Positions 16,350-57,986 of a stretch of 64,000 nt of DNA are shown here, piece after piece. The first letter of the stretch is position 1. Every line of letters begins with the position of its first letter. The DNA is from Utricularia gibba (Eukaryota; Plantae; Magnoliophyta), in contig NEEC01000019.1 of the NCBI GenBank assembly GCA_002189035.1, forward strand, positions 868,001 through 932,000, written 5' to 3'. The position numbers were made by a program, and so were the translations under genes. The notes under the pieces are model-generated. The model was not told where the DNA came from. It made no database searches and saw nothing but the letters and a program-made list of their open reading frames with translations.

Positions 16350-18039
16350 CGCATTTTGATTTCGAAGGTGATTGAATTAAAAAAAGCAAATGAACAGTGA
16401 AAAAAACATTTATCAAAATATTTATAATTAAGAATTCGGACACGATTCGATCATGATTTAATATCGTTTGACCATATTTTAATATTTTTATAATAAATTG
16501 TTTTGAAATGATTCAACCATGATGTAAGTCGATTGACCCTATCAAATTATAAACTATTTATAGAATTATTTCATTTATTTTTTTTACAATTTAAAATACT
16601 ATTTATCGGTCATGTTCTTGCACACGAAAAGTCCCCTCGAGTCACGGGTAAAGTAAAACCCGGGAAGAAACCGTGACCGGGAAATCCCCTGAGATCTTGT
16701 GGCCCAACGCGAGCTGAGTCCTCGCAATCACCGGCTTCGTCGGTGGCCACGGCGGAGAGCACGCACCTGCGCAAACTTGTCTTATTGACCTTTTTTTCAT
16801 CTAGCGTAATTTGTAAGAATGTCGAATTTAAAAATAATTTATTTTATTTATAAAATACCGGTAGCGGACGTCGTTGTGTCGAGCTGGCAGAGTAAGAACG
16901 AGAAGCTGAAGACAACATGGGGCGCCTGTATGGTGGTGTGGCCATGGCCATGAACATGGTCATGGTCATGATGTTACATGCCACATTTGCGTGCCGGTGA
17001 ATGGGAATTGAAGGAGACGTGACACCCAACATAAATTCTACCATGATTTACTTTATTTATTTTTACTGGCTTTCCGTGAAGCTCATCCACAACCACAACC
17101 TCATGCATATGTTGATGATGTACCATGCTTTTACCATTCAATGGCCATGTCATGTCGGTCGCACAAGGATCAAATGTGTGGTGGCCCACTCTTTCCATAG
17201 AATATACATATTTGAAGTGGGCCGAAGTCCCCTTGACTGCGGTGGGCCAGGGTCAACCCTTTTGACTGGCTCGGCTCATGGATGACGGGTGGGTTTGTCC
17301 CGTTTCTATTTTGATTAAAAAAATTATCCTTGTAATTAAAAAAATATATATCTGATTTAGGAATTGGAGGGACACGATTATTAGAATTTACCATTTTTAA
17401 AAAACATGAGAAGAACAACAACCAACGAGGGCCGTTAGATCTCCCCTTCGATCGTCGTGGGGCCTACTGCTTTCAAAACCCTAGTCCTCCGCAGCCGACA
17501 CCGACACCGACACGCCCTTCTTGATTAGGTTTTATTTATTTATTTTTTATTTTGATTTAATGAGGGATTTTTGAAAGGGTCAATTTATTGGTACAAAAAA
17601 AAACAATATTTCACATCAATAAATAAAAATACAACAAGAATCTATGTTTATAACCTAATATGGTTCGATGGGTTCGAGCCACTGGAATAATGAATACAAC
17701 AATTATTTTTTATTATAATTTATAAATATATTTGTTTATTTCTTGTTTTATCTATTATTTTATTATAAAAGTATCAATCGGATAGATAGATAAGTTTTTC
17801 AATTAAAAAAACAGATGTCAAGTAAGAAAAATAAGAATAAATAAGTAAATCCTAAATAGTGTGCGAAGTGATGTAAATTGGTATTTTTAAACAATTATAT
17901 AAGTTAATTATCATTTTTTAATTCTGTATTTAAAAGTAGTAATTTTTTACTATTTTTCATCAAAGAAATAAAAAAATGGTAAATGAATGATATCTTAAAT
18001 GGGAAGAACAATGATTGGCCTATTCTTTAATTTAAAACT

Positions 18040-18385
18040 TTATTTTAAATTATATAGAATAGACATAGTTTTAAAATTATGTAAGTAGAATTATTTTTAG
18101 ATCGCAAAACTATTTGTGAGATAACATAATATTATATTATAAATTTAATAAAATAAAATAATTATTATAAAGTTTAATATATTATATTATTATATAATTT
18201 AATGTTATGACATAAATGTATTTTTAGAATAGTTAACAATTTAATATAATTTTTATAATTAATATTTTATTTAATCCTTATGAAGTTTATTATGTAATTT
18301 CAATATATAATTTTACTATGTAACGTTTAAAGATTAAATTTTAAAAAATTAAACATAATCAATTCAATAAAAAATATAAAAACAT
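18040..18385 (+). repeat. Dispersed AT-rich repeat family A, copy 3
   Basis: Contains the same core (TATATAATTTAATGTTATGACATAAATGTATTTTTAGAATA) and the same block order. Confidence 0.55.
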
Positions 18386-22500: not shown

Positions 22501-25028
22501 GAAATTTTCTTGCTTAGGCTTTTCTCTTGTGGGACAAGCAAAGATGGAGAGTCACACATTGTTGAGTGGAATGAAAGTGAAGGAGCTGTGAAAAGGACAT
22601 ATCAAGGTTTCAGGAAGAGGTCTTTGGGGGTTGTGCAGTTCGATACATCTAAAAATAGGTACTTGGCTGCGGGTGATGACTTCTCCATCAAATTCTGGGA
22701 CATGGACAATACTCAGCTTCTGATCAGTAGTGATGCAGATGGAGGTCTTCCAGTGAGTTCTTATAAATATATTGCGGGCGCCTGCTCATTAATGTATTAT
22801 GCAGCAGAAGTTTCTCATTTGCTATAACAATTTTCAGGCCAGTCCACGTATACGTTTCAACAAAGATGGCAACCTCCTGGCTGTTTCTGCCAATGAAAAT
22901 GGAATCAAGATATTAGCAAATACTGATGGTTTTCGGATGCTACGGACGTTTGAAAATATCACATTTGATGCCCGGTCTGAAGCAGTAAAGGTATTTGCTT
23001 CTTTTTTGTGTTGTTTCTCAGTGTTGCATGATGAACTTTTTTTCATTTTCTCAGCCTGCTGTGAACCCAGCATCTGCAACAACTGCAAACAGCACAGGAC
23101 TTGCAGAGCGGTTATCTTCAGCTGCTATCTCTGCAGTGGTTGGCATTGTTTCCTTTTCCATCGATTATTATTCTTTACCTTTCAAATGTCTCATGTTCTG
23201 TGTGTTCTATCTTTTAAGAAGGTGGAGTCCAGAAATCTTGCAGATCTAAAGCCTAGAATGTCTGAAGAAACTAGTGATAAACCAAAGATCTGGAAGCTGA
23301 CTGAAATTACTGAACAATCTCAGCTCCGTTCCTTGAAGCTTCCTGAAAATCTAAGAGTAACAAAGGCATGCATGCACCATTCACGCCAACATTTCATTTT
23401 TCCCATTTGAAACCCTTCTGTTTTAGTAGGATCGGTCTAACAAGCTGCTGCTTTGTTTGCTGCTGTAGCAGATATCAAGATTGATATACACAAATTCTGG
23501 AAATGCTATACTTGCATTAGCTTCAAATGCAATCCATTTACTCTGGAAATGGCAGCGAACTGATCCCAAGTCAAGTGGGAAGGTTAGTTGTGATATATCT
23601 GCCTTTTGAATGCTCCTGTTTATGAAAAAAATTAAAATAGTGTCGGCTTTTCAGGCAACTGCCAGCGTGCTCCCGCAACTATGGCAACCATCGAGCGGAA
23701 ACTTGATGACCAATGATACGGCGGATTCAAACCCAGAGGAAGCTGTTCATTGCTTTGCTTTGTCCAAAAATGACTCGTACGTAATGTCAGCATCTGGAGG
23801 AAAGATTTCTTTGTTCAACATGATGACTTTCAAGGTGATACATAGAGTAGATCGTTGGCAGCTTCCTTCGTTTTGCCGATGACATCTCATGTTTCTTTTA
23901 TGATTCAGACAATGACCACGTTCATGCCTCCGCCACCAGCTGCAACATTTTTGGCATTCCATCCGCAAGATAACAACATTATAGCAATTGGAATGGATGA
24001 TTCCTCTATTCAGATATACAATGTTCGAATTGATGAGGTAGGGACTATCTCTTGAAAAAAATATGGGTAGTAGAAAGCAAGCACCTTAAGCTGTTTTTTT
24101 ATTGCAAAATCGCTCCTTTTCAGGTTAAATGTAAGCTGAAAGGTCACTCTAAAAGAATCACTGGTCTTGCTTTCTCACATGTACTAAGTGTCCTGGTTTC
24201 ATCGGGTGCTGATGCTCAGGTGAGAAGCTTATTCATAACGTGTTTGTGATGTTTGAAGAATGCATCGATTGAATATTTCCTGGTTTCAAATTTTCTCACA
24301 GATTTGCATATGGAATTGTGACGGATGGGAGAAGCAAAGATCAAGAGCCTTGCAACTCCCACCCGGAAGATCACCAATTGTGCAGTCTGAAACTCGTGTT
24401 CAGTTTCACCAAGATCAAATTCACTTTCTAGTTGTGCACGAGACACAGCTTGCTATATATGAAGCCTCCAAGTTGGAATGCATAAAGCAGGTAACTCTTC
24501 TGTTTCCTAGTGGGATAAGTTCATTTCCTCCCGTTCATCCCTCATGAATTCTGTTTCTTTGTCAGTGGACCTCTCATGAATCCTATGTCCCAATATCGCA
24601 TGCGGCGTTCTCATGCGACAGCCAGCTTATATATGCAAGTTTTCTTGATGCTAGTGTTTGCATTTTCACTGGCATACATCTCCGACTACAATGCCGTATC
24701 AGTCCAGCTGCTTATCTGCCTTCTAGTCCCAGGCAAGTCTCCTGAATCTTGTTTAACTGCACAATGCGTGGTAATGAAGCTTCTATCTCCCTTGTTTTTA
24801 TCCCACAGTTCCAGTGTGCACCCTCTTGTGATAGCATCTCATCCACATGAGCCGAATCAGTTTGCGTTAGGCCTTTCTGATGGTTCAGTCCAAGTCATCG
24901 AGCCCCTGGAGTCAGAAGGCAAATGGGGTCAGCCACCACCCCTTGAAAACGGCAGCTCCACCATCGTTATTCCTTCAAGCTCTCCTTTAGTTGGAGTAGG
25001 TTCCACGTCAGATCAACCGCATCGATGA
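19576..25028 (+). CDS. TPL: TOPLESS / TOPLESS-related transcriptional co-repressor (LisH-CTLH-WD40), multi-exon
   Basis: Starts MSSLSRELVFLILQFLDEEKFKETVHK|LEQESGFYFNMKYFEDEV. Contains SLNWQHQLCKNPRPNPDIKTLFVDHSC and WD40 repeats through HPLVIASHPHEPNQFALGLSDG. The exons inspected join in frame. The exact paralogue (TPL vs TPR1) is not resolved. Confidence 0.95.
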
Positions 25029-25577
25029 TTAACCATCCATGAACCTGGTAGCCATTCCATCTACACCTGGAATCAGCAGCTTCCACGGCAGCACTGCAAA
25101 GCAGAAACGTGAATCAACACTTGGGCGGTGAGTGTAAGCTTTCTTTCAAGCATTTTGTGAGTTTTCGCAAGCTTGTGCTGAAGATAGATACATGCATACA
25201 TATTGTATGTACATTAATCCTTTTGGTATCGTCCATCCGCTATTCTTCTTTCAGTCTGCAATCAATCCTTTTTTCTTTTTCAAGAACTCTCTAACATCTT
25301 GGTTTGTGGTAAGTCTTTTGAAGTAGTAGATACTTTGATAAAGAAAAATACAGCATTTTTCTGAGCAGTCCTTTCTGTTGGAGGATCAAAGTGGTTCGAC
25401 GGATATGGAGATGAATATTGAACCTCTGGGCACGGTTCCTAACCATTGAGCATCTTTCCAACCTCATGCCGGTACTGTACAAGTAAACTACAGTGCTGAG
25501 GTGCACTGACAATGCTGCACATGTATATAATGATGGAGATGCTGAAGAATACAGAGTTTTGTGGTCACATGCTAATC

Positions 25578-27024
25578 TTAGGAATCCTCAAGAGGGCAGG
25601 AGCCGTCATCGAAGGTGGCTAGCGGATTGTACATCGGTGAACTTGGATCAGTGCATCCTGGAACCAGGTCGAGGCTGCAGCGATCGCCCTGCATTCCAAT
25701 GAAGGGAGCCATAACTAAGTCCATGGATGGTCCCCAATCGACTGTTCGAAAGATTCCCATAGTGACATATTCTTACTCACCCCTTCTAGTGACAAGTTTC
25801 CCATGATTGTGCATCTGTCAACTACAACTTCGGTATCTGGGAATATGGCTCCTTCACAAGCACCCTCTTCGCTCAGCTCCGCTGCTAGACCCTGTGAGAC
25901 AGGAGCATTCAAACAAACTGTATCATGCCAGCAGGAGTTCATTCTTCCCTTACTACATATCTGCTGGTTCTTTGAAGCATATAATGTTGGGATGGAAATG
26001 GATAATGCAGAAGAAATGCAAAGACCAAGCTGATAATAGTCTCACCTCTACGAAGAACGAAGGTGGTTTGTTTCGCCAAGCATTCGGCACTTGAAGCTGG
26101 AGTCGATAAGGGCCATCCCATTCAGTGCCGTTGGTGAATGAGAATAGCAAACTCAAAGCTGGAATTCATTGCCCAATGCCATCATCAAATTTTTTTTAAA
26201 AAACTGTGTAATCTTCAAGCGAACAAGCCTAGATGAGACAATAGTATTACTGTACCATGTTTCGGGATGCATATCTGGATTGTGTAAATGGGAGGATCAG
26301 CTATGCCTCTCACTTTCTGAAGCATAGCCCTTGGTTGGCCTCCACACATAATAGGCTGATTGAATCCTCCTGTCACTAAAAACCTTGAGAATCGGAACAC
26401 AACAAGTTTTTTATTGTCAACAAATTGCAGGTACCATTGAATGCTATTCCATAATCTTCATTAGGAACAAGGTTCTTAGCGGCTGGATTGTAGAAAAGCT
26501 TCAGTCTTTCTCCCTTGCAGAGTTGGTGTACCATGAATCAGACAGAGATTCCATTCATTTACAGGAGTATTTTTTTTCCATTAAAAGATGCTTGCTTACA
26601 GAGGTAGGAGGAAGCCCGTTCGTAGTTTTCCAATACACTGGAGCTCGTCCGAGTTCAAATTCAGCCCATTTCGGAAGTTTGCATCTGAAACAAAAACAAA
26701 AAGCCTCCAATAAAAGTTCAAACATAAAAAGAGAAACAGAGGACTCACTCTTGTACTTCCTCCACAGCAGGCGCAGGCGCTGAAACAGCAGCGATCACTA
26801 TACCATTGATTTTTCCTGGTTTTATTTTGCTAGGAAAGTTTCTCCTCAAGGGAGAACCCAAAAAGCCGACCCCTGTAGTTCAATTAGCAGAATCAGAAAG
26901 CTTGGGAAAGATTGTTCTTGATGAAGAAATGGGTATTACCAGGGGCAAGGATTCTGGTTGGAGCAGATGAGATTTGCTTCACGTGAGTGAGAAGAGAAGA
27001 ACTTGTGGCTGTTGCTGCAGCCAT
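25578..27024 (-). CDS. PIFI: POST-ILLUMINATION CHLOROPHYLL FLUORESCENCE INCREASE protein, chloroplastic; 8 exons
   Basis: Transit peptide, then [61 protein letters not shown] and [32 protein letters not shown]. The exons join in frame. Confidence 0.92.
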
Positions 27025-27180
27025 CTTTGTGAGGGAGCAAGGAGGATTGAATGTTACTGAGATATTTAAAGACAATCTTTTCAAATATCTAAAATATCCT
27101 CACTCTGTTCATTTTCTTCATTTTTTGGTCATGACTATAACAAAAACTGAAGGGAGCGAGGGTACTTTAGACATTTATAA

Positions 27181-27300
27181 AGATTGACAATAAATATCTT
27201 AATAACATCCAATCTTCCCTCCCTCATGGCTGCAGCAACATCCACAAGTTCTTCTCTTCTCACTCCCTAGAAGCAAATCTCATCTGCTACTACAAGAACA
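27181..27300 (+). repeat. Inverted duplicate of the PIFI 5'UTR and exon 1 (pairs with about 26950-27078)
   Basis: ATGGCTGCAGCAACATCCACAAGTTCTTCTCTTCTCACTCCCTAGAAGCAAATCTCATCTGCT from 27226 matches the PIFI start on the minus strand at 59 of 63 positions. The flanking 5'UTR also aligns. The copy carries an in-frame TAG. Confidence 0.92.
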
Positions 27301-27719
27301 GAATGAAATTCCTCTGAAAGATGTAGAGTGTCCAAGAGCTCCTCCATTCTCTGTTGTTCTTTCAGTTAGGCCTGAAAGTGAAATTGAGAATTCTTGGTGG
27401 CAAAAGGATTGAATTGACTGAATGCGTCGCTGCCGGAGTTCCATTTATAACACAGTTCTTGTTCGAAGTTCCTGAGACAAAAACATGGTCTTGATAAGCG
27501 ATGTTTGGAAGTTACTGTCTGGTTAATGCAACACAAGCAAAGTATACCTTAGAGCATAATTCCGTTCATGAATGAATGAAGACTTCACAGCTCAACGAAC
27601 AACTGAAACCAACATTGAGAAAATGCACAGTGTACACTCATGTACAGAATCCATGCCAAAGGAAGCAAATGTTTACGAATCTCCAACGCAATGCAAAGAG
27701 CCAGAGGCCCAGAGAGCTT

Positions 27720-27739
27720 CACACACACACACACACACA
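27720..27739. repeat. (CA)10 microsatellite
   Basis: Perfect CA dinucleotide run. Confidence 0.85.
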
Positions 27740-28545
27740 TATAGTAATATTACACTGGACCACCGTTTTACTCAGGCCTGAAACTCACCAGAGAATAGAG
27801 ACAAGTGGTGCGGTGCTACTTTATGGTGTTGGCGGTCACCTTGCATGATTCCACTGTAGGAGATTTCACGTCCTTGAGGCAGATGCAATAAACCAGCGCA
27901 TGTTACAGGGGGGTGAAGTAGTCCTGTGCTTCCATAGAACTTGACATTATGCAGAGAGAGTTGAACGCCATTATGGCAATGGGATGCATACATGTGACTC
28001 GAAGTATACCTGAAATGGATCTAAGATATCTGTCAAGCGGCTGTTATGAGATAGGATTCAGGAGTGTCAGGTCAGGGATGCAAGACTGAGAATTACTTTA
28101 CATCGAAAATTCCTAACAAACAAAGCGAGAACATATTGGACAAAAACATGTCCAGGATTTACCTCACCGCAAATGGGTGTAATCCAGATGCATCAGTCAA
28201 ATCAAATCTGCAAATGAAGATCAGAGGGAAGTGTACATGTAGCATAGCAACATAGTTTACCTGCAAGAGCAGTGAAGTCAAGCATCTGAACTGAGGGTCT
28301 TGAGAAATGATACAGAATTCAAAGTCTCCAGATTAGTTTTACAGTCTAAATTCAGCATTTATATTTATCGATATACCGTTCTAGAATTTAATCTACTTTC
28401 GATCCATTTGCCAATCCAACCATCAATATTCACACCCCTATGTGAAATCAGACATTCAGAATCAATGTCCTCGTAGTAGTTTTTACAAGATGGGAATAAG
28501 AAAGAAGAGATAAGTTGAAAAGAACTCGAAGAAAAAGTGTGAAAC

Positions 28546-31500
28546 TCAGAAGTGAATCTTGAAGAGTAGGCCGCCATGAGTGGCAAAAAAAGGAGCAAAA
28601 ACGAGTGATTCAACAGCCATGAGCTTGATGAGGATGTTGAGTGAAGGGCCTGACGTGTCTTTCAGAGGGTCCCCAATTGTGTCCCCAATCACAGCTGCCT
28701 TGTGCGGATCCGATCCCTTTGGCCCAAGGCTTCGAGCGTGCTCTGATGCACCAGCCTACAACAAAGAGCAAGTAGTATCGCAGCAAATCCAGGCATCCAA
28801 TCATGCTCTGATACATAGTGTATGCCATCAATATTTGAGTTAGCAGCTTTACCTCAATGTACTTCTTTGCATTGTCCCATGCACCGCCGGTGTTGGAAGC
28901 AGAGATGGCAATCTGTGGGGAAAAGGCAGGACACATGAGGAGGACAAGAGTTAAATCTGGATACAGCAGAAAAGAAGCATGATTTGCAGACCTGAACTCC
29001 GGAGACAAGTGCTCCAGCGAGAACTCCAGAAAGGGTCTCAACACCGAAGAAGATGCCAACAATCAAAGGGGTAAGCATGACAAGGGCCCCTGGTGGAATC
29101 ATCTCCTTAATAGATGCATCAGTAGAAATCTTGACGCATGTTGCATAGTCAGGCTTGGCAGTGCCATCCATGAGTCCAGGGATGGTGTTGAACTGTCGGC
29201 GGACTTCCTCCACCATCTTAAGTGCGGCGCTCCCCACGCTCTTCATGGTCATGGCAGAGAACCAGTAGGGAAGCATGGCACCAACGATTAGGCCGATGAA
29301 AACCTTGGGGTCAGCACGTCGACCTTGGAAATCGATGCACGACTCACAAAGGCACCAAAAAGTGCTAGTGAAACAAGTGCAGCTGATCCAATGGCAAAGC
29401 CCTTTACACAATAAAATGCATTGTGAATGACATAGGGAAAAGGATTCGTTGTCGCAATAGAGAAGGTAAAATACAGAAAACAGGTACCTTTCCAATTGCA
29501 GCAGTAGTGTTCCCAGCAGCATCAAGTGCGTCAGTTCTCTCGCGGATCCTGTGGGGCATTCCAGCCATCTCAGCAATACCCCCAGCATTGTCACTGATAG
29601 GACCATAAGCATCTATAGCTAAGCCTGTTGCGATGGTGCTCAACATCCCCAGGGCAGCAACAGCAATACCATACATGGCAGCTAAAGAGAAGCTAACGAA
29701 AATGCTAACAGCAATTGCAAATATTGGAATAATGACGGATTTATATCCTAAGGCGAGGCCAAATATGACATTGGTAGCAGCACCAGTTCTGCAGGAATCA
29801 GCCACATCTTGCACGGGGCTAGAGAAAGAAAGCCACCCACCAGAGATTAGTGTTGAATGAAACCAAATAAAAGAGAGTAAAATGCGCATACATATATCAT
29901 GTGCACCTGTAAGCATTACTGGTATAATACTCTGTTACAAAGCCAATTATGAGTCCAGACCAAAGTCCAACGCAGACGCAGAAAGCAAGGTGCCTAAATC
30001 CATTGAAAACGGAGAGCTAATGAGATAAGAGTTCTAATACCAAGTTCTCAACTTGATCACTAAACGGATACCTACCAATTCTTGACAACCTTTTGAGCAC
30101 CAAAATTGAAAATAGTGAAGGAAGATGGCAGGCAAGTGAACGTGACAATGAAAATTCCGATTGTCATAAGAACAGTGGAGATAACCAGCTGCATCTTTAG
30201 GGCTGGTTCGATTTCTTTGACAGCCTTGATCTCAAAAAAATCAGTAGCGAAAAGGGTGGTGATTAAACAAACGAGGATTCCCATGGAACTAATGAGTAAG
30301 GGATAACACATAGCAGTGAGGTCATGATTCAAGCCAAAGGAGGATATGGAAGCTACAACAAGTGCTGCGCAGGATGATTCAGCATATGATCCAAAAAGAT
30401 CTGACCCCATTCCAGCAATGTCTCCAACGTTGTCACCAACATTGTCAGCAATCACCTGTAAACATAAAGATTATGAACGAATCTAATTCCGTTTAGAGAG
30501 TTTTAAAAGGTGAGTTCATTAGCGTACAGCAGGGTTTCTAGGGTCATCTTCAGGGATGTTCCTTTCAACCTTCCCGACAAGATCCGCACCAACATCAGCA
30601 GCTTTGGTGTAAATACCGCCTCCAACTCTTCCAAACAAAGCCATAGAAGACCCACCAAGACCATAGCCTGTAATCGCCTCAAATAAGCCTTCCCAATCAT
30701 CTCCATAATAGCTCTTGAACAGATTGATGGCTATGTAGAGAACCAAAAGGCCATTTGCAGCAAGAAGAAAGCCCATGACTGCACCCGACCTAAACGCAGT
30801 GATAAAAGCTTTCCCAACGCTTTTTCTAGCTTCTAGTGTTGTCCTAGCATTGGCATATGTCGCAATTTTCATTCCCAGGAAACCAGAGACGACAGAAGTG
30901 AAAGCTCCAAGCAAGAAAGATAGAGTGCTGAAGACTGCAGTGGCAAGAGCAGGTTTGCACAGCTTTTCCTTGTCGTAAGTGCAAGGTTGGTCCTTTGTGC
31001 TGAACCCGTTCACTGAGCCCAGGAAAACGAATATGAGGGCAGCGAATATAACCATGAAACCCCCCACATATTGGTACTCGGTATACAGAAATGATGTGGC
31101 ACCTGTAAACCAAAATCCATGAAGCAAACAATGAATCGTTGCATCAGCAAAATAAGCAAAGATATAAACTAGTCCATATTGCCCATTACACGGTTGGACA
31201 GAAAACGAGACATAAAACGATACAAAGATGATGACAGGGGCAGCTTCTTCCTGATTGTACAGGAACAAGTTCCAAGCAGAGAAGATAAAAACAAGCAATC
31301 CACCCACAACAAAGTCACCAAGAAAAGCATCGTAACTGCAAAATGAAAGCGACCCCTGTGAGTGATGAAGGCAGGCAAACAAAATGACCCTGCCTTGTGG
31401 AACTGTCTCACTCACGTAGTTTTACACAATTACACAAATCCAAACGCAGCCTGTTTTAATGACAGTAAACAATAATAATAATAACGAAAGTAAAGAGTGC

Positions 31501-38287: not shown

Positions 38288-39173
38288 ATTGTAACGTAAG
38301 CAACATCTTTGATAACTGCCTGCATTGTATTCCTGATTGTAAAGATAATATTCATATCTCTATAGTTCCAAGAAACTACACCAAAGACTGGATGGCTCCA
38401 TAACAGGCACCCATTTTGCTCAGCTACTTCGCTAGATAATTGGAAACGAATGCAAAGAACAAGGGTTTAACCTAGCCTGAAGTTGGCATCTTTCGCCAAT
38501 GATATGAATGAAACTGCAGCCAAAATGAAATCCCATTGGGAATCATCTTCTTAGCAGGTAGATTTTAGTAAAGCTTTAGTCTTTCTGTGTTTGAGAGCTT
38601 GCTGTATCATGAAAATGAAACTAGGTTTACCAGTGATTAGCACAAGGGAGAATCACAAGGGCTGGCCCCTGTTGTTCATTTACCATAAATAAGATGAGGG
38701 AAAATGTAAGAAGTGAAAGGGATTTCCGCTGTTGAGTGTTGGCAAGGGGATGAGCATTTCATAGCACCAGGATTTCTGGGTGAAGGGGCTGAGATTTGCT
38801 CCAAGGGATTGAAAAGGGGAGCATCCACTGCAGACATTTTGCTAGAGATATCTTTGCAAGGGCAAAATGGATAGAGCGATCCTGGGAGATTTAAAGGGAA
38901 CCACACAAGTACAATCTGCGTATCCCAGGAAATCTGGGTAGCGAAACACAAAAAATGTAACTTTCCGATGGAATTTATATACCCATCGCCTTATCGAAAT
39001 TATTCAATTTCACTCGAGACCCACAAATTCTCCACCGCCTATCAACCCCAGCACCCGACCCCGCCTGTCATTTTCCATTCCGTCGCAGCAGTGAGTCGGC
39101 ATGACGAATCCTGCGTGAAGTATAGAGATTTCTCGATATCCTTGTTACCAGCAGAGGTAAAGCATCACCGGAA

Positions 39174-40642
39174 ATGGCCCTCCTGGCGCCGCCGCCGACG
39201 AGCAGTCATTTTCCAACCTTGGAAACCAAGAAATTGAGACCAGGTTCTTCCATTGCCGCTCAAAATTGCAAAGAGTCATCCTTTTGCGCTGCGAGTTTTG
39301 GCCCAAAAAGGAGCTCGGCCAGTAAGTTCCTCCAGAATGGCTCATTATTCCGAAGGAACGAGTGGGGTATCAAAAGAGAGATACCCAGAGTGAGCTTCGG
39401 TTCAGCACCTTCGTCAGCAATGTCTTTTGGGAAAATATTGCTTTCTGATGTAGTTGTGCAGAGGAAGAGGAATGTTTACTGGGGGAGAAAATGGGATGCT
39501 TTAGAAGTAGCCATATTGGCGGTGGTGCTGGCTATGCACGTGTTATGCTTTTTTGCTCCTTTTACTTTCAGTTTTGGCGCCCTTTATGTTGCTATTGGTT
39601 TGTATGTGATCACCGGTCTTCTTGGTATCACGCTCTCCTTCCATAGAAACCTTTCTCACAGGAGCTTCAAGCTTCCCAAATGGCTTGAGTATTTCTTTGC
39701 TTACTGTGGAGTTCAAGCTCTACAGGTTCAAACTTGATTCTTTTTATCCTCTCGAAATTGACACATACCTTATCTCTTGACTGGTGATGCGATGATGCAA
39801 CAGGGAAATCCCATCGACTGGGTAAGCACACACAGATATCACCACCAGTTCTGTGATACAGACAAGGATCCTCACAGCCCTCTTGAAGGATTTTGGTTCA
39901 GTCACATGAGCTGGCTTTTTGACAAGTCATCTGTTGTTCAAAGGGTACCAACCTACTACTAGATGTTAAGTCTCTTCTCTTTCCCTGTTATCAGTGTGTT
40001 ACTAGTAGAGAGAGCATGATATATTGCAGTGTGGAGCGCCCAACAACGTTGGAGATCTGGAAAAGCAGCCCTTTTACAAGTTTCTTCGTAGTACTTACAT
40101 TTTTCACCCCATCTTGCTGGCTGCACTTCTTTATGCCATTGGCGGATTTCCCTACATTGTTTGGGGAATGGTAAGCTACAAAAGCATCAATCGAAATCAC
40201 CTATTCATATCAGTCCCAACTCCTGTTGGCTAAGATGCATCCTTCATTTTGCCTCACAGGGTGTGAGAACAGTGTGGGTGTACCACATCACTTGGCTAGT
40301 GAACTCAGCTTGCCATGTCTGGGGAAACCAAGCTTGGAACACCGGTGACTTATCACGAAACAACTGGTAAATCCACTACTCCACCGCATTGTATTTTCAC
40401 CAAACTGGTACCAGTTATTGAACTACTGATGAACCTGAAGGTGGGTAGCTTTGCTTGCATTTGGAGAGGGGTGGCATAATAACCACCATGCTTTTGAGTA
40501 TTCAGCGAGGCATGGATTGGAGTGGTGGCAATTCGACATGACTTGGTACGTGGTCAGGCTCCTTCAGGCCATTGGTTTGGCCTCCGATGTCAAACTTCCC
40601 ACTGCTGCACACAAGGAGAGGGCCAGGTTTAGTGTAGAATGA
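39174..40642 (+). CDS. FAD5: Acyl-lipid desaturase of the ADS family with plastid transit peptide (FAD5/ADS3-like, 16:0-MGDG delta-7), 5 exons
   Basis: Has His boxes HRNLSH, HRYHH and HNNHH, plus QGNPIDWVSTHR and AFGEGWHNNHH, and a long Ser-rich N-terminal extension. Regiospecificity is inferred. Confidence 0.85.
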
Positions 40643-56428: not shown

Positions 56429-57986
56429 TACAGATTGAACAACGTGAACCATAATGAAAACACGCAAAATATGTAGATGAGCATCAAATGCAGCCACTGA
56501 TGACTTATATTCTTATTTTATTAGTTATTAATTATGAGTTATTTGTATAAATAGGACATAATAGATTTCCTTTATGTGTAAATACGAACCATCTTTCCAC
56601 TTTTATTGAACAATGATTTCCTTTAATGATTGCACATCAAACCTCCTTCAATAATTGCATAAACTAATATCCAGAAAAAAAAAACGAGTTGGATGACATA
56701 TAAAATTTAATAATAACTTCTTCCACTGTGTGACTCTTCAGTTTTATTACAAAAATGAAAAAAAAATCCATGAAATTTTGGATTTATTAATGACTATGTT
56801 ATTTTATTAAAAATTTACTCTCATAACAGTTTTTATTCAATATAATTTTAATTCTTTATATTCATAAAACTTACCTATCAAATTCACAAAAACAAATATT
56901 AATACAATTGGTATGTTATGTAAATATACTTTTTGAATTGTTTTTATTTAATTTTTAAAGATTATAATTTTTAATTCTTTGATATCAAAATTAAAAATTC
57001 AAATTATATGATTAATTTCACAAATTATTGAAATTCTGATTAAATAAAAATTAATTAATAATTATAATATTTATGTTCTATTTACGTTAAAATATATTTA
57101 TATCATAAATTTAAATTATATAATATTTTAATATAATAAACTTTAACATATATAAATATTGTATTAAATTTTATAATAAAATTTGATACTATTTTATAAA
57201 ATAATTTTATAATATTAAAATGATTATATTCATATAATTTAAACTCGATTTTATTCTATATAATTAGAATAAATTCTAAAACAGCTTAAATATATCATTA
57301 TCTAAATGAAATAATTCAGATATATCATTGATTAAATAATTTCAAATGCATCTATTGTTTCTTATTTACTATTTCTTTTTTCAATTATGATGTATATGTT
57401 TATTTATATTTGTAGATATTGGGGTTTTTGTTTGGCACATGCTGCGGGTCACTAATCCACTTGGACGCGGAGACTTCAATTCGCTTTTGTGTGGGGAAAA
57501 CTTAGGAGTGAAGAAGCTAACGCCAACATAATTTGATATTTTTTTTAAAAAAAAATTAATTAATTAAAATAAAAAATGTGGATTTAGCTATGAGATATTC
57601 GGGAAAGGAGATGAGTGGTGGACATTCCTCAGCATCGAATATTCCAACCTCTGCGTTACGTGTCCCATTTCCTTGAGACTCGCTTTTAGTTTCTACCCCT
57701 CCTTTGCTAAAAAGGTGGGAAATGTAATATCTTAAAATTATAGGTTTAATTTGAAATTAAATTTAAATTCATAATTAAATCTAAAAATATTTTTATTTGT
57801 GTTAAATATTTTTAAATAGAATTAAAATTATTGAGATTAATTATATTTATTATGAAAAATTGTTTCAAATTCATGATTAAATTATTATATATTGTCGGAA
57901 ATAAAGAAATTCATATTAATTATTTTTTTGATTTTTAATTAATAATAATTCGGTAATCATCTCTTCTAATCCTTTGTGATTAGTGC

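Follow-up and report, generated by a model that had tools for sequence, protein, structure and literature searches.

Results

In Utricularia gibba, the expressed PIFI gene is bordered on its 5′ side by an inverted copy of its own 5′ end, and on present evidence this inverted repeat is most likely a tolerated structural relic. We consider it probable that the repeat is a neutrally decaying by-product of rearrangement, acting at most as a weak source of hairpin siRNAs, and not as an established MIRNA or a strong silencer. The preliminary description of this DNA called it a candidate hairpin locus, which is a fair label. The features discussed below lie within the window, by which we mean the whole 64-kb stretch of DNA that was analysed (Table 1).

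Table 1. Coordinates of PIFI, its inverted repeat and the associated features in the window
Feature	Position	Strand	Description
PIFI gene	25578..27119	-	8 coding exons, 273 aa; ATG 27024-27022, stop 25580-25578; from RNA contig splice joints and spliced translation
PIFI introns	26873-26939, 26685-26748, 26514-26599, 26370-26434, 26159-26255, 25892-26045, 25689-25780	-	GT..AG
Left arm	26952..27115	-	PIFI 5′UTR (27025-27115) and first 73 nt of CDS (27024-26952); exon 1, expressed
Loop	27116..27143		28 nt; farthest 5′ end of the PIFI mRNA contig (27119) at its edge
Right arm	27144..27298	+	decayed inverted copy of the 5′UTR and first 24 codons
Low-level upstream transcript(s)	27163..28373	-	between the H+-PPase 3′ end and PIFI; word depth ~4-5
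Upstream RNA pieces	27760-28373; 27547-27687 spliced to 27316-27470; 27163-27349 (contig X13, 0 differences)	-	RNA contigs
PIFI pseudogene	38322..38896	-	exon-1, intron-1/exon-2, exon-4 and exon-6/7 remnants with stops; exons 3 and 5 missing
Fatty-acid desaturase gene	39423..40630	+	head-to-head with the pseudogene; tblastx against the FA_desaturase gene of L001, E 1.9e-153

The expressed PIFI gene

The PIFI gene model was derived from RNA contigs mapped on 24900-28700, with the intron cuts placed by their GT..AG ends. RNA runs were examined as 31-mer contigs, and abundance is given as word depth. Comparison of the exons with known domains gave matches above cut-off to PF25419 (PIFI-like Ig-like domain) at 26600-26683, 26257-26367 and 26046-26156, in agreement with the earlier naming of the gene. 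An exon query retrieved PIFI proteins from a library of 1.84 billion proteins, and the 273-aa product is ~71% identical over its full length to the named PIFI proteins of Paulownia, Salvia and Henckelia, in a comparison that used exon references and a mixed alignment with some exons poorly aligned. No protein nearer than ~71% identity was found in the protein searches. The domain matches, together with full-length similarity to named PIFI proteins, place the gene in the PIFI family. PIFI is reported to stabilise the chloroplast NDH-PSI supercomplex (bioRxiv 10.64898/2026.03.22.713156).

The seven introns of PIFI are all very short, at 64-154 nt, and neighbouring genes stand close together, which would fit a compact genome. 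The intron at 26873-26939 (67 nt) lies within the transit-peptide region. Downstream of the gene, the PIFI RNA contigs continue for at least 770 nt beyond the stop codon (24551-25578 of the window), into the last exon (ORF 24576-25028) of a convergent plus-strand gene, which we take to be TOPLESS-like. These convergent 3′ ends at 24551-25578 may represent a natural antisense overlap or transcripts merged by the assembler.

The PIFI mRNA contig is correctly spliced, with a mean word depth of ~105, compared with ~45-55 for the neighbouring H+-PPase gene. In run X1, an RNA contig covers 26939-27119 with 0 differences. The contigs have their 5′ ends at 27119 (X1, the farthest) and ~27029 (X13). 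Because the farthest 5′ end lies at the edge of the loop, the main PIFI mRNA carries the left arm without the right arm, and hence does not fold back. PIFI RNA is abundant, and strong silencing of PIFI is therefore excluded in the sampled tissues, where any silencing is partial at most. This expression contradicts a strong effect of the repeat on PIFI.

Geometry of the inverted repeat

An inverted-repeat search returned two adjoining pairs of arms, 26952-27024/27226-27298 (73 nt, 90% complementary) and 27041-27115/27144-27218 (75 nt, 79%). Gapped alignment showed that the two pairs are one, 26952-27115 versus 27144-27298, with 132/155 aligned bases identical (85%), mismatches at 23 sites, and two indels of 6 nt and 3 nt (arm-versus-arm blastn E = 1.9e-79). 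The arms are ~155-164 nt long and are separated by a spacer of 28 nt (27116-27143). The inverted copy of the PIFI 5′UTR and exon 1 proposed earlier is therefore present, but by gapped alignment its arms are longer than the ~120 nt first given and its loop is much shorter than the ~100 nt first given. A 63-nt core with 4 mismatches (27241, 27266, 27268 and 27269) was recovered as described. The arms also share a 40-nt stretch with one mismatch, consisting of exact runs of 15 and 24 nt. The right arm occupies the proximal upstream region of PIFI, where the proximal promoter is expected.

By self-blast, this is the sole local inverted repeat with E<1e-5 in the 64-kb window. The only other inverted match at this threshold pairs 18031-18370 with 56930-57280 (~360 nt, 73% identity); its copies are 38.6 kb apart and probably belong to a dispersed repeat, and the 56930-57280 copy lies inside a very AT-rich block (GC 0.23, 56-58 kb).

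RNA folding of 26940-27310, suggested as a check in the preliminary description, gave a strong hairpin on either strand (-192.6 kcal/mol for the plus strand and -203.4 kcal/mol for the minus strand). Shuffled sequences had a mean of ~-87 kcal/mol (z ~-20), and 0/100 shuffles folded as well. The minus-strand fold is on the PIFI-sense strand, with a hairpin of ~155 bp, and the whole foldback spans ~347 nt with roughly 155 paired positions. The arm alignment and the fold both uphold the earlier statement that any RNA with the two arms in it would pair back on itself across the start codon.

Authenticity of the structure

Palindromes with short spacers are a known class of assembly artefact, arising for example as palindromic chimeras during long-read library preparation. 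Palindromes made in this way carry identical arms, whereas the arms here have 23 differing sites and the two indels. Further, a short-read DNA contig from a second sample (X11, 26995-27459, 0 differences) leads out of the left arm, across the loop and over the whole right arm, and exact matches to 26939-27119 and 27163-27349 were obtained with RNA contigs of a separate study. DNA run X14, from another study, contributed no contigs here despite a 0.27 share of words in the index. Because the arms have diverged, X11 bridges the loop and the RNA contigs match both arms, a misassembly, which the preliminary description had asked to be checked, is ruled out, and we leave an artefact only a minimal chance. 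A MITE, or a foldback transposon of another type, inserted at the 5′ end of PIFI would account for the hairpin shape and short loop. However, the arms are PIFI's own 5′UTR and coding sequence, are homologous to the PIFI pseudogene and encode the same transit-peptide start, and the left arm belongs to a spliced mRNA. Self-blast of the 64-kb window revealed no further copies of the arms except the homologous exon 1 of the PIFI pseudogene. With genic arms and no other copies within the window, a transposon origin is likewise ruled out, and we hold it to be extremely improbable.

The right arm is a dead copy

The right arm contains a copy of the start codon (ATG at 27226-27228), followed at codon 15 by the TAG stop noted earlier (27268-27270). 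Its plus-strand translation, MAAATSTSSSLLTP*KQISSATTR, is 83% identical to PIFI residues 1-24. The 6-nt and 3-nt indels are deletions in the right arm, and its homology ends at 27298, 12 nt before the position equivalent to the end of exon 1 (26940). Using the pseudogene as an outgroup, ~4 changes in the CDS part were assigned to the right arm and ~2 to the left. Divergence between the arms is 7/73 in the CDS and 16/82 in the UTR, a difference that is not significant (Fisher p = 0.11). As judged from its sequence, the right arm is a dead copy, and its changes have the look of neutral decay. Between the arms, the Jukes-Cantor distance is 0.165, which at the rough neutral rates commonly quoted for plants corresponds to several million years. 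The survival of a closely spaced palindrome to 15% divergence could hint at retention.

Relocation of PIFI

A PIFI pseudogene lies 11.7 kb from the expressed gene, head-to-head with a fatty-acid desaturase gene (Table 1), which also gave a PF00487 fragment match under the family cut-off. Locus maps of Paulownia, Erythranthe and Henckelia show PIFI head-to-head with a fatty-acid desaturase gene. A PDCT-like gene, the other conserved neighbour of PIFI, was not found in the window (tblastx E<1e-6). Because the pseudogene holds the conserved place beside the desaturase, the arrangement indicates that the expressed PIFI is a relocated duplicate, and that the ancestral copy beside the desaturase died.

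The left arm is ~68% identical to the exon-1 region of the pseudogene, compared with 85% to the right arm. Since the left arm is nearer to the right arm than to the pseudogene, the inverted copy was made from the relocated gene, either after the relocation or with homogenisation of the arms since. Upstream of 27071, homology between the expressed PIFI and the pseudogene is not above the shuffled background. The comparison with related species proposed earlier showed that the exon-1 inverted repeat is absent from the PIFI loci of Paulownia, Erythranthe and Henckelia (3/3 Lamiales loci).

Transcription upstream of PIFI

A vacuolar H+-pyrophosphatase (H+-PPase) gene (PF03030) lies upstream of PIFI on the same strand, and its RNA contig ends at ~28475. 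Low-level RNA was detected between the two genes in several pieces, one of which is spliced. The splice joint 27470^27547 reads CT..AC on the plus strand, corresponding to GT..AG on the minus strand; the strand is known for this spliced piece only, and the other pieces were assigned by adjacency. The weak upstream RNA covers 136/155 right-arm bases and is antisense to PIFI there (27163-27349). Genomic DNA contamination is an unlikely source of this RNA, because the minus-strand contig is spliced at GT..AG ends and the PIFI intron bin 25916-26042 has a depth of 0 in the same runs.

No RNA contig crosses the loop, with 43 nt (27120-27162) unbridged at a patchy depth of ~5 and with two runs covering different pieces. 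Because only these 43 nt are unbridged in the union of the RNA contigs, RNAs containing the whole hairpin may well exist. The 27163-28373 transcript (intron about 27471-27547) has no obvious conserved ORF, and could be an alternative leader of PIFI, a lncRNA or a product of read-through. One gap in the RNA coverage is due to a short (CA)n microsatellite at 27710-27752, which was skipped as a repeat in the mapping.

Discussion

Origin and expected behaviour of the repeat

The repeat is a genuine inverted partial duplication, lineage-specific and aged, in which ~160 bp comprising the PIFI 5′UTR and first 24 codons were copied in inverted orientation directly upstream, leaving the 28-nt spacer. 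Its most likely origin is a fold-back event that accompanied the local rearrangements by which PIFI was also shifted by 11.7 kb. Both arms would be held only in rare RNAs that start upstream on the same strand, either as H+-PPase read-through or as the intergenic spliced RNA, and such RNAs would fold into an imperfect hairpin of ~155 bp over the start codon. Inverted-repeat RNA in plants is established to be diced into siRNAs (PMC1790633; also PAI1-PAI4, PMC3203196). The plant Dicer-like enzymes would be expected to cut the PIFI hairpin into heterogeneous siRNAs, and the exact runs of 15 and 24 nt, with one mismatch between them, would let siRNAs from the right arm pair efficiently with PIFI mRNA.

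A stronger version of this proposal is a working hairpin-RNA or young MIRNA-type locus, in which upstream or H+-PPase read-through RNAs fold and are diced to siRNAs or a miRNA that would direct cleavage in PIFI exon 1 or methylation of the promoter and first exon, and would thereby adjust the dose of this NDH-PSI regulator. The size and stability of the PIFI-sense hairpin (~155 bp, -203 kcal/mol), the spliced minus-strand transcript over 136/155 right-arm bases, and the near-perfect 15- and 24-nt stretches one mismatch apart are consistent with such a locus. The route from inverted duplication to MIRNA and hpRNA loci is itself established (PMC1790633, PMC3237417), and an upstream promoter is described as driving the endogenous inverted repeat PAI1-PAI4 and so signalling methylation (PMC3203196). 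Against it, the loop is crossed by no RNA contig, the PIFI contig ranks with the more abundant ones of those runs, and the pattern of divergence between the arms fits neutral decay. A known MIRNA family was rejected, as Rfam gave only sub-threshold, hairpin-shaped matches, the best being MIR3932 with 30.9 bits against a gathering score of 150. Typical MIRNA precursors are shorter than the ~347-nt foldback, which is more like an hpRNA than a canonical precursor. A literature search for a link between PIFI and miRNAs found none, and was dominated by unrelated papers on pifithrin. We regard a working locus of this kind as unlikely.

The inverted copy might instead have been recruited as a promoter, either the core promoter of the relocated PIFI or a bidirectional one, with transcription starting ~30 nt downstream, within the loop or next to it. 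On the minus strand, a canonical TATAAA occurs only within the right arm (27179-27174). It is 55-60 nt upstream of 27119, where the farthest contig ends, and contigs built from short reads usually end before the true 5′ ends. The left-arm counterpart of this motif reads TTTGAAAAG, and two adjacent differences between the arms (27082/27177 and 27081/27178) create the TATA box of the right arm. Moreover, because homology to the ancestral 5′ region is detectable only up to 27071, the relocated copy would have needed new upstream sequence. However, a TTTAAAT at 27070-27064, which the pseudogene shares, may represent the original TATA box, contig X13 stops at ~27029, and A/T-rich motifs are frequent by chance; promoter co-option accordingly seems to us rather doubtful. 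The two readings could also hold jointly, with read-through from the strongly expressed H+-PPase gene giving a self-targeting hairpin over the PIFI start codon while the inverted copy supplies the TATA box of the relocated PIFI. If this were true, siRNAs would couple PIFI dose to the transcription of its neighbour, and one small duplication would serve at once as promoter and as brake for a gene stripped of its ancestral regulatory context. To this combination we give little credence, and we retain a tolerated, decaying relic as the preferred explanation.

Comparison with known systems

Gene-derived inverted duplications are the accepted raw material of new MIRNA and hairpin-siRNA loci in plants, and to our knowledge most have been seen only once they were separate loci. 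The PIFI repeat would capture a very early, cis-linked stage, in which the first exon of the parent gene still works and itself forms the sense arm. It would make it possible to test directly if a structure of this kind is tolerated, silenced or co-opted, and any effect on PIFI dose could be read by chlorophyll fluorescence.

Both arms of the PIFI repeat are similar to a protein-coding gene, the left being PIFI exon 1 and the right its copy, as in an inverted-duplication progenitor, and the locus agrees with the model in which MIRNA and hpRNA loci are born by inverted duplication (PMC1790633, PMC3237417). Young loci formed by inverted duplication of a target gene, following the model of Allen et al. 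2004, include the MIR161, MIR163 and MIR822 class (PMC1790633, PMC3237417). Like the PIFI repeat, these have arms recognisably derived from a protein-coding gene, pair imperfectly after drift, and are lineage-specific. The PIFI repeat differs in that its sense arm is the first exon of a working gene and not a copy, its spacer coincides with the 5′ end of that gene, and its arms (~160 nt) are longer than those of typical precursors; it is a candidate, known from sequence and RNA contigs.

The PAI1-PAI4 inverted repeat of Arabidopsis Ws owes its transcription to a heterologous promoter that lies upstream (Melquist & Bender 2003, cited in PMC3203196). As described there, it is endogenous and gene-derived like the PIFI repeat, its potential to form dsRNA depends on an unrelated upstream promoter, and one repeat unit still supplies functional protein. 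PAI1-PAI4 consists of whole genes placed tail-to-tail with near-identical arms, and its methylation and siRNAs are demonstrated according to the same source, whereas the PIFI repeat is a head-to-head, partial duplication of 160 bp with 85% identity. Maize Mu killer, an inverted partial duplication that silences a transposon in trans (Slotkin et al. 2005, cited in PMC1790633), shares with the PIFI repeat the inversion of the 5′ end of a transcription unit, which yields a hairpin when read from a flanking promoter. The target of Mu killer in that account is a transposon in trans, with silencing demonstrated, whereas the target of the PIFI repeat would be a host photosynthesis gene in cis, where silencing was not seen.

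Mismatched hairpin-RNA transgenes offer a further comparison. In these, mismatches between the arms are reported to prevent DNA methylation of the inverted repeat and self-silencing, while RNAi persists (PMC9263138). These transgenes are engineered and driven by strong promoters, and the 85% identical PIFI repeat is likened to them by analogy only. By this analogy, the mismatches between its arms would be compatible with an expressed PIFI beside a diverged repeat.
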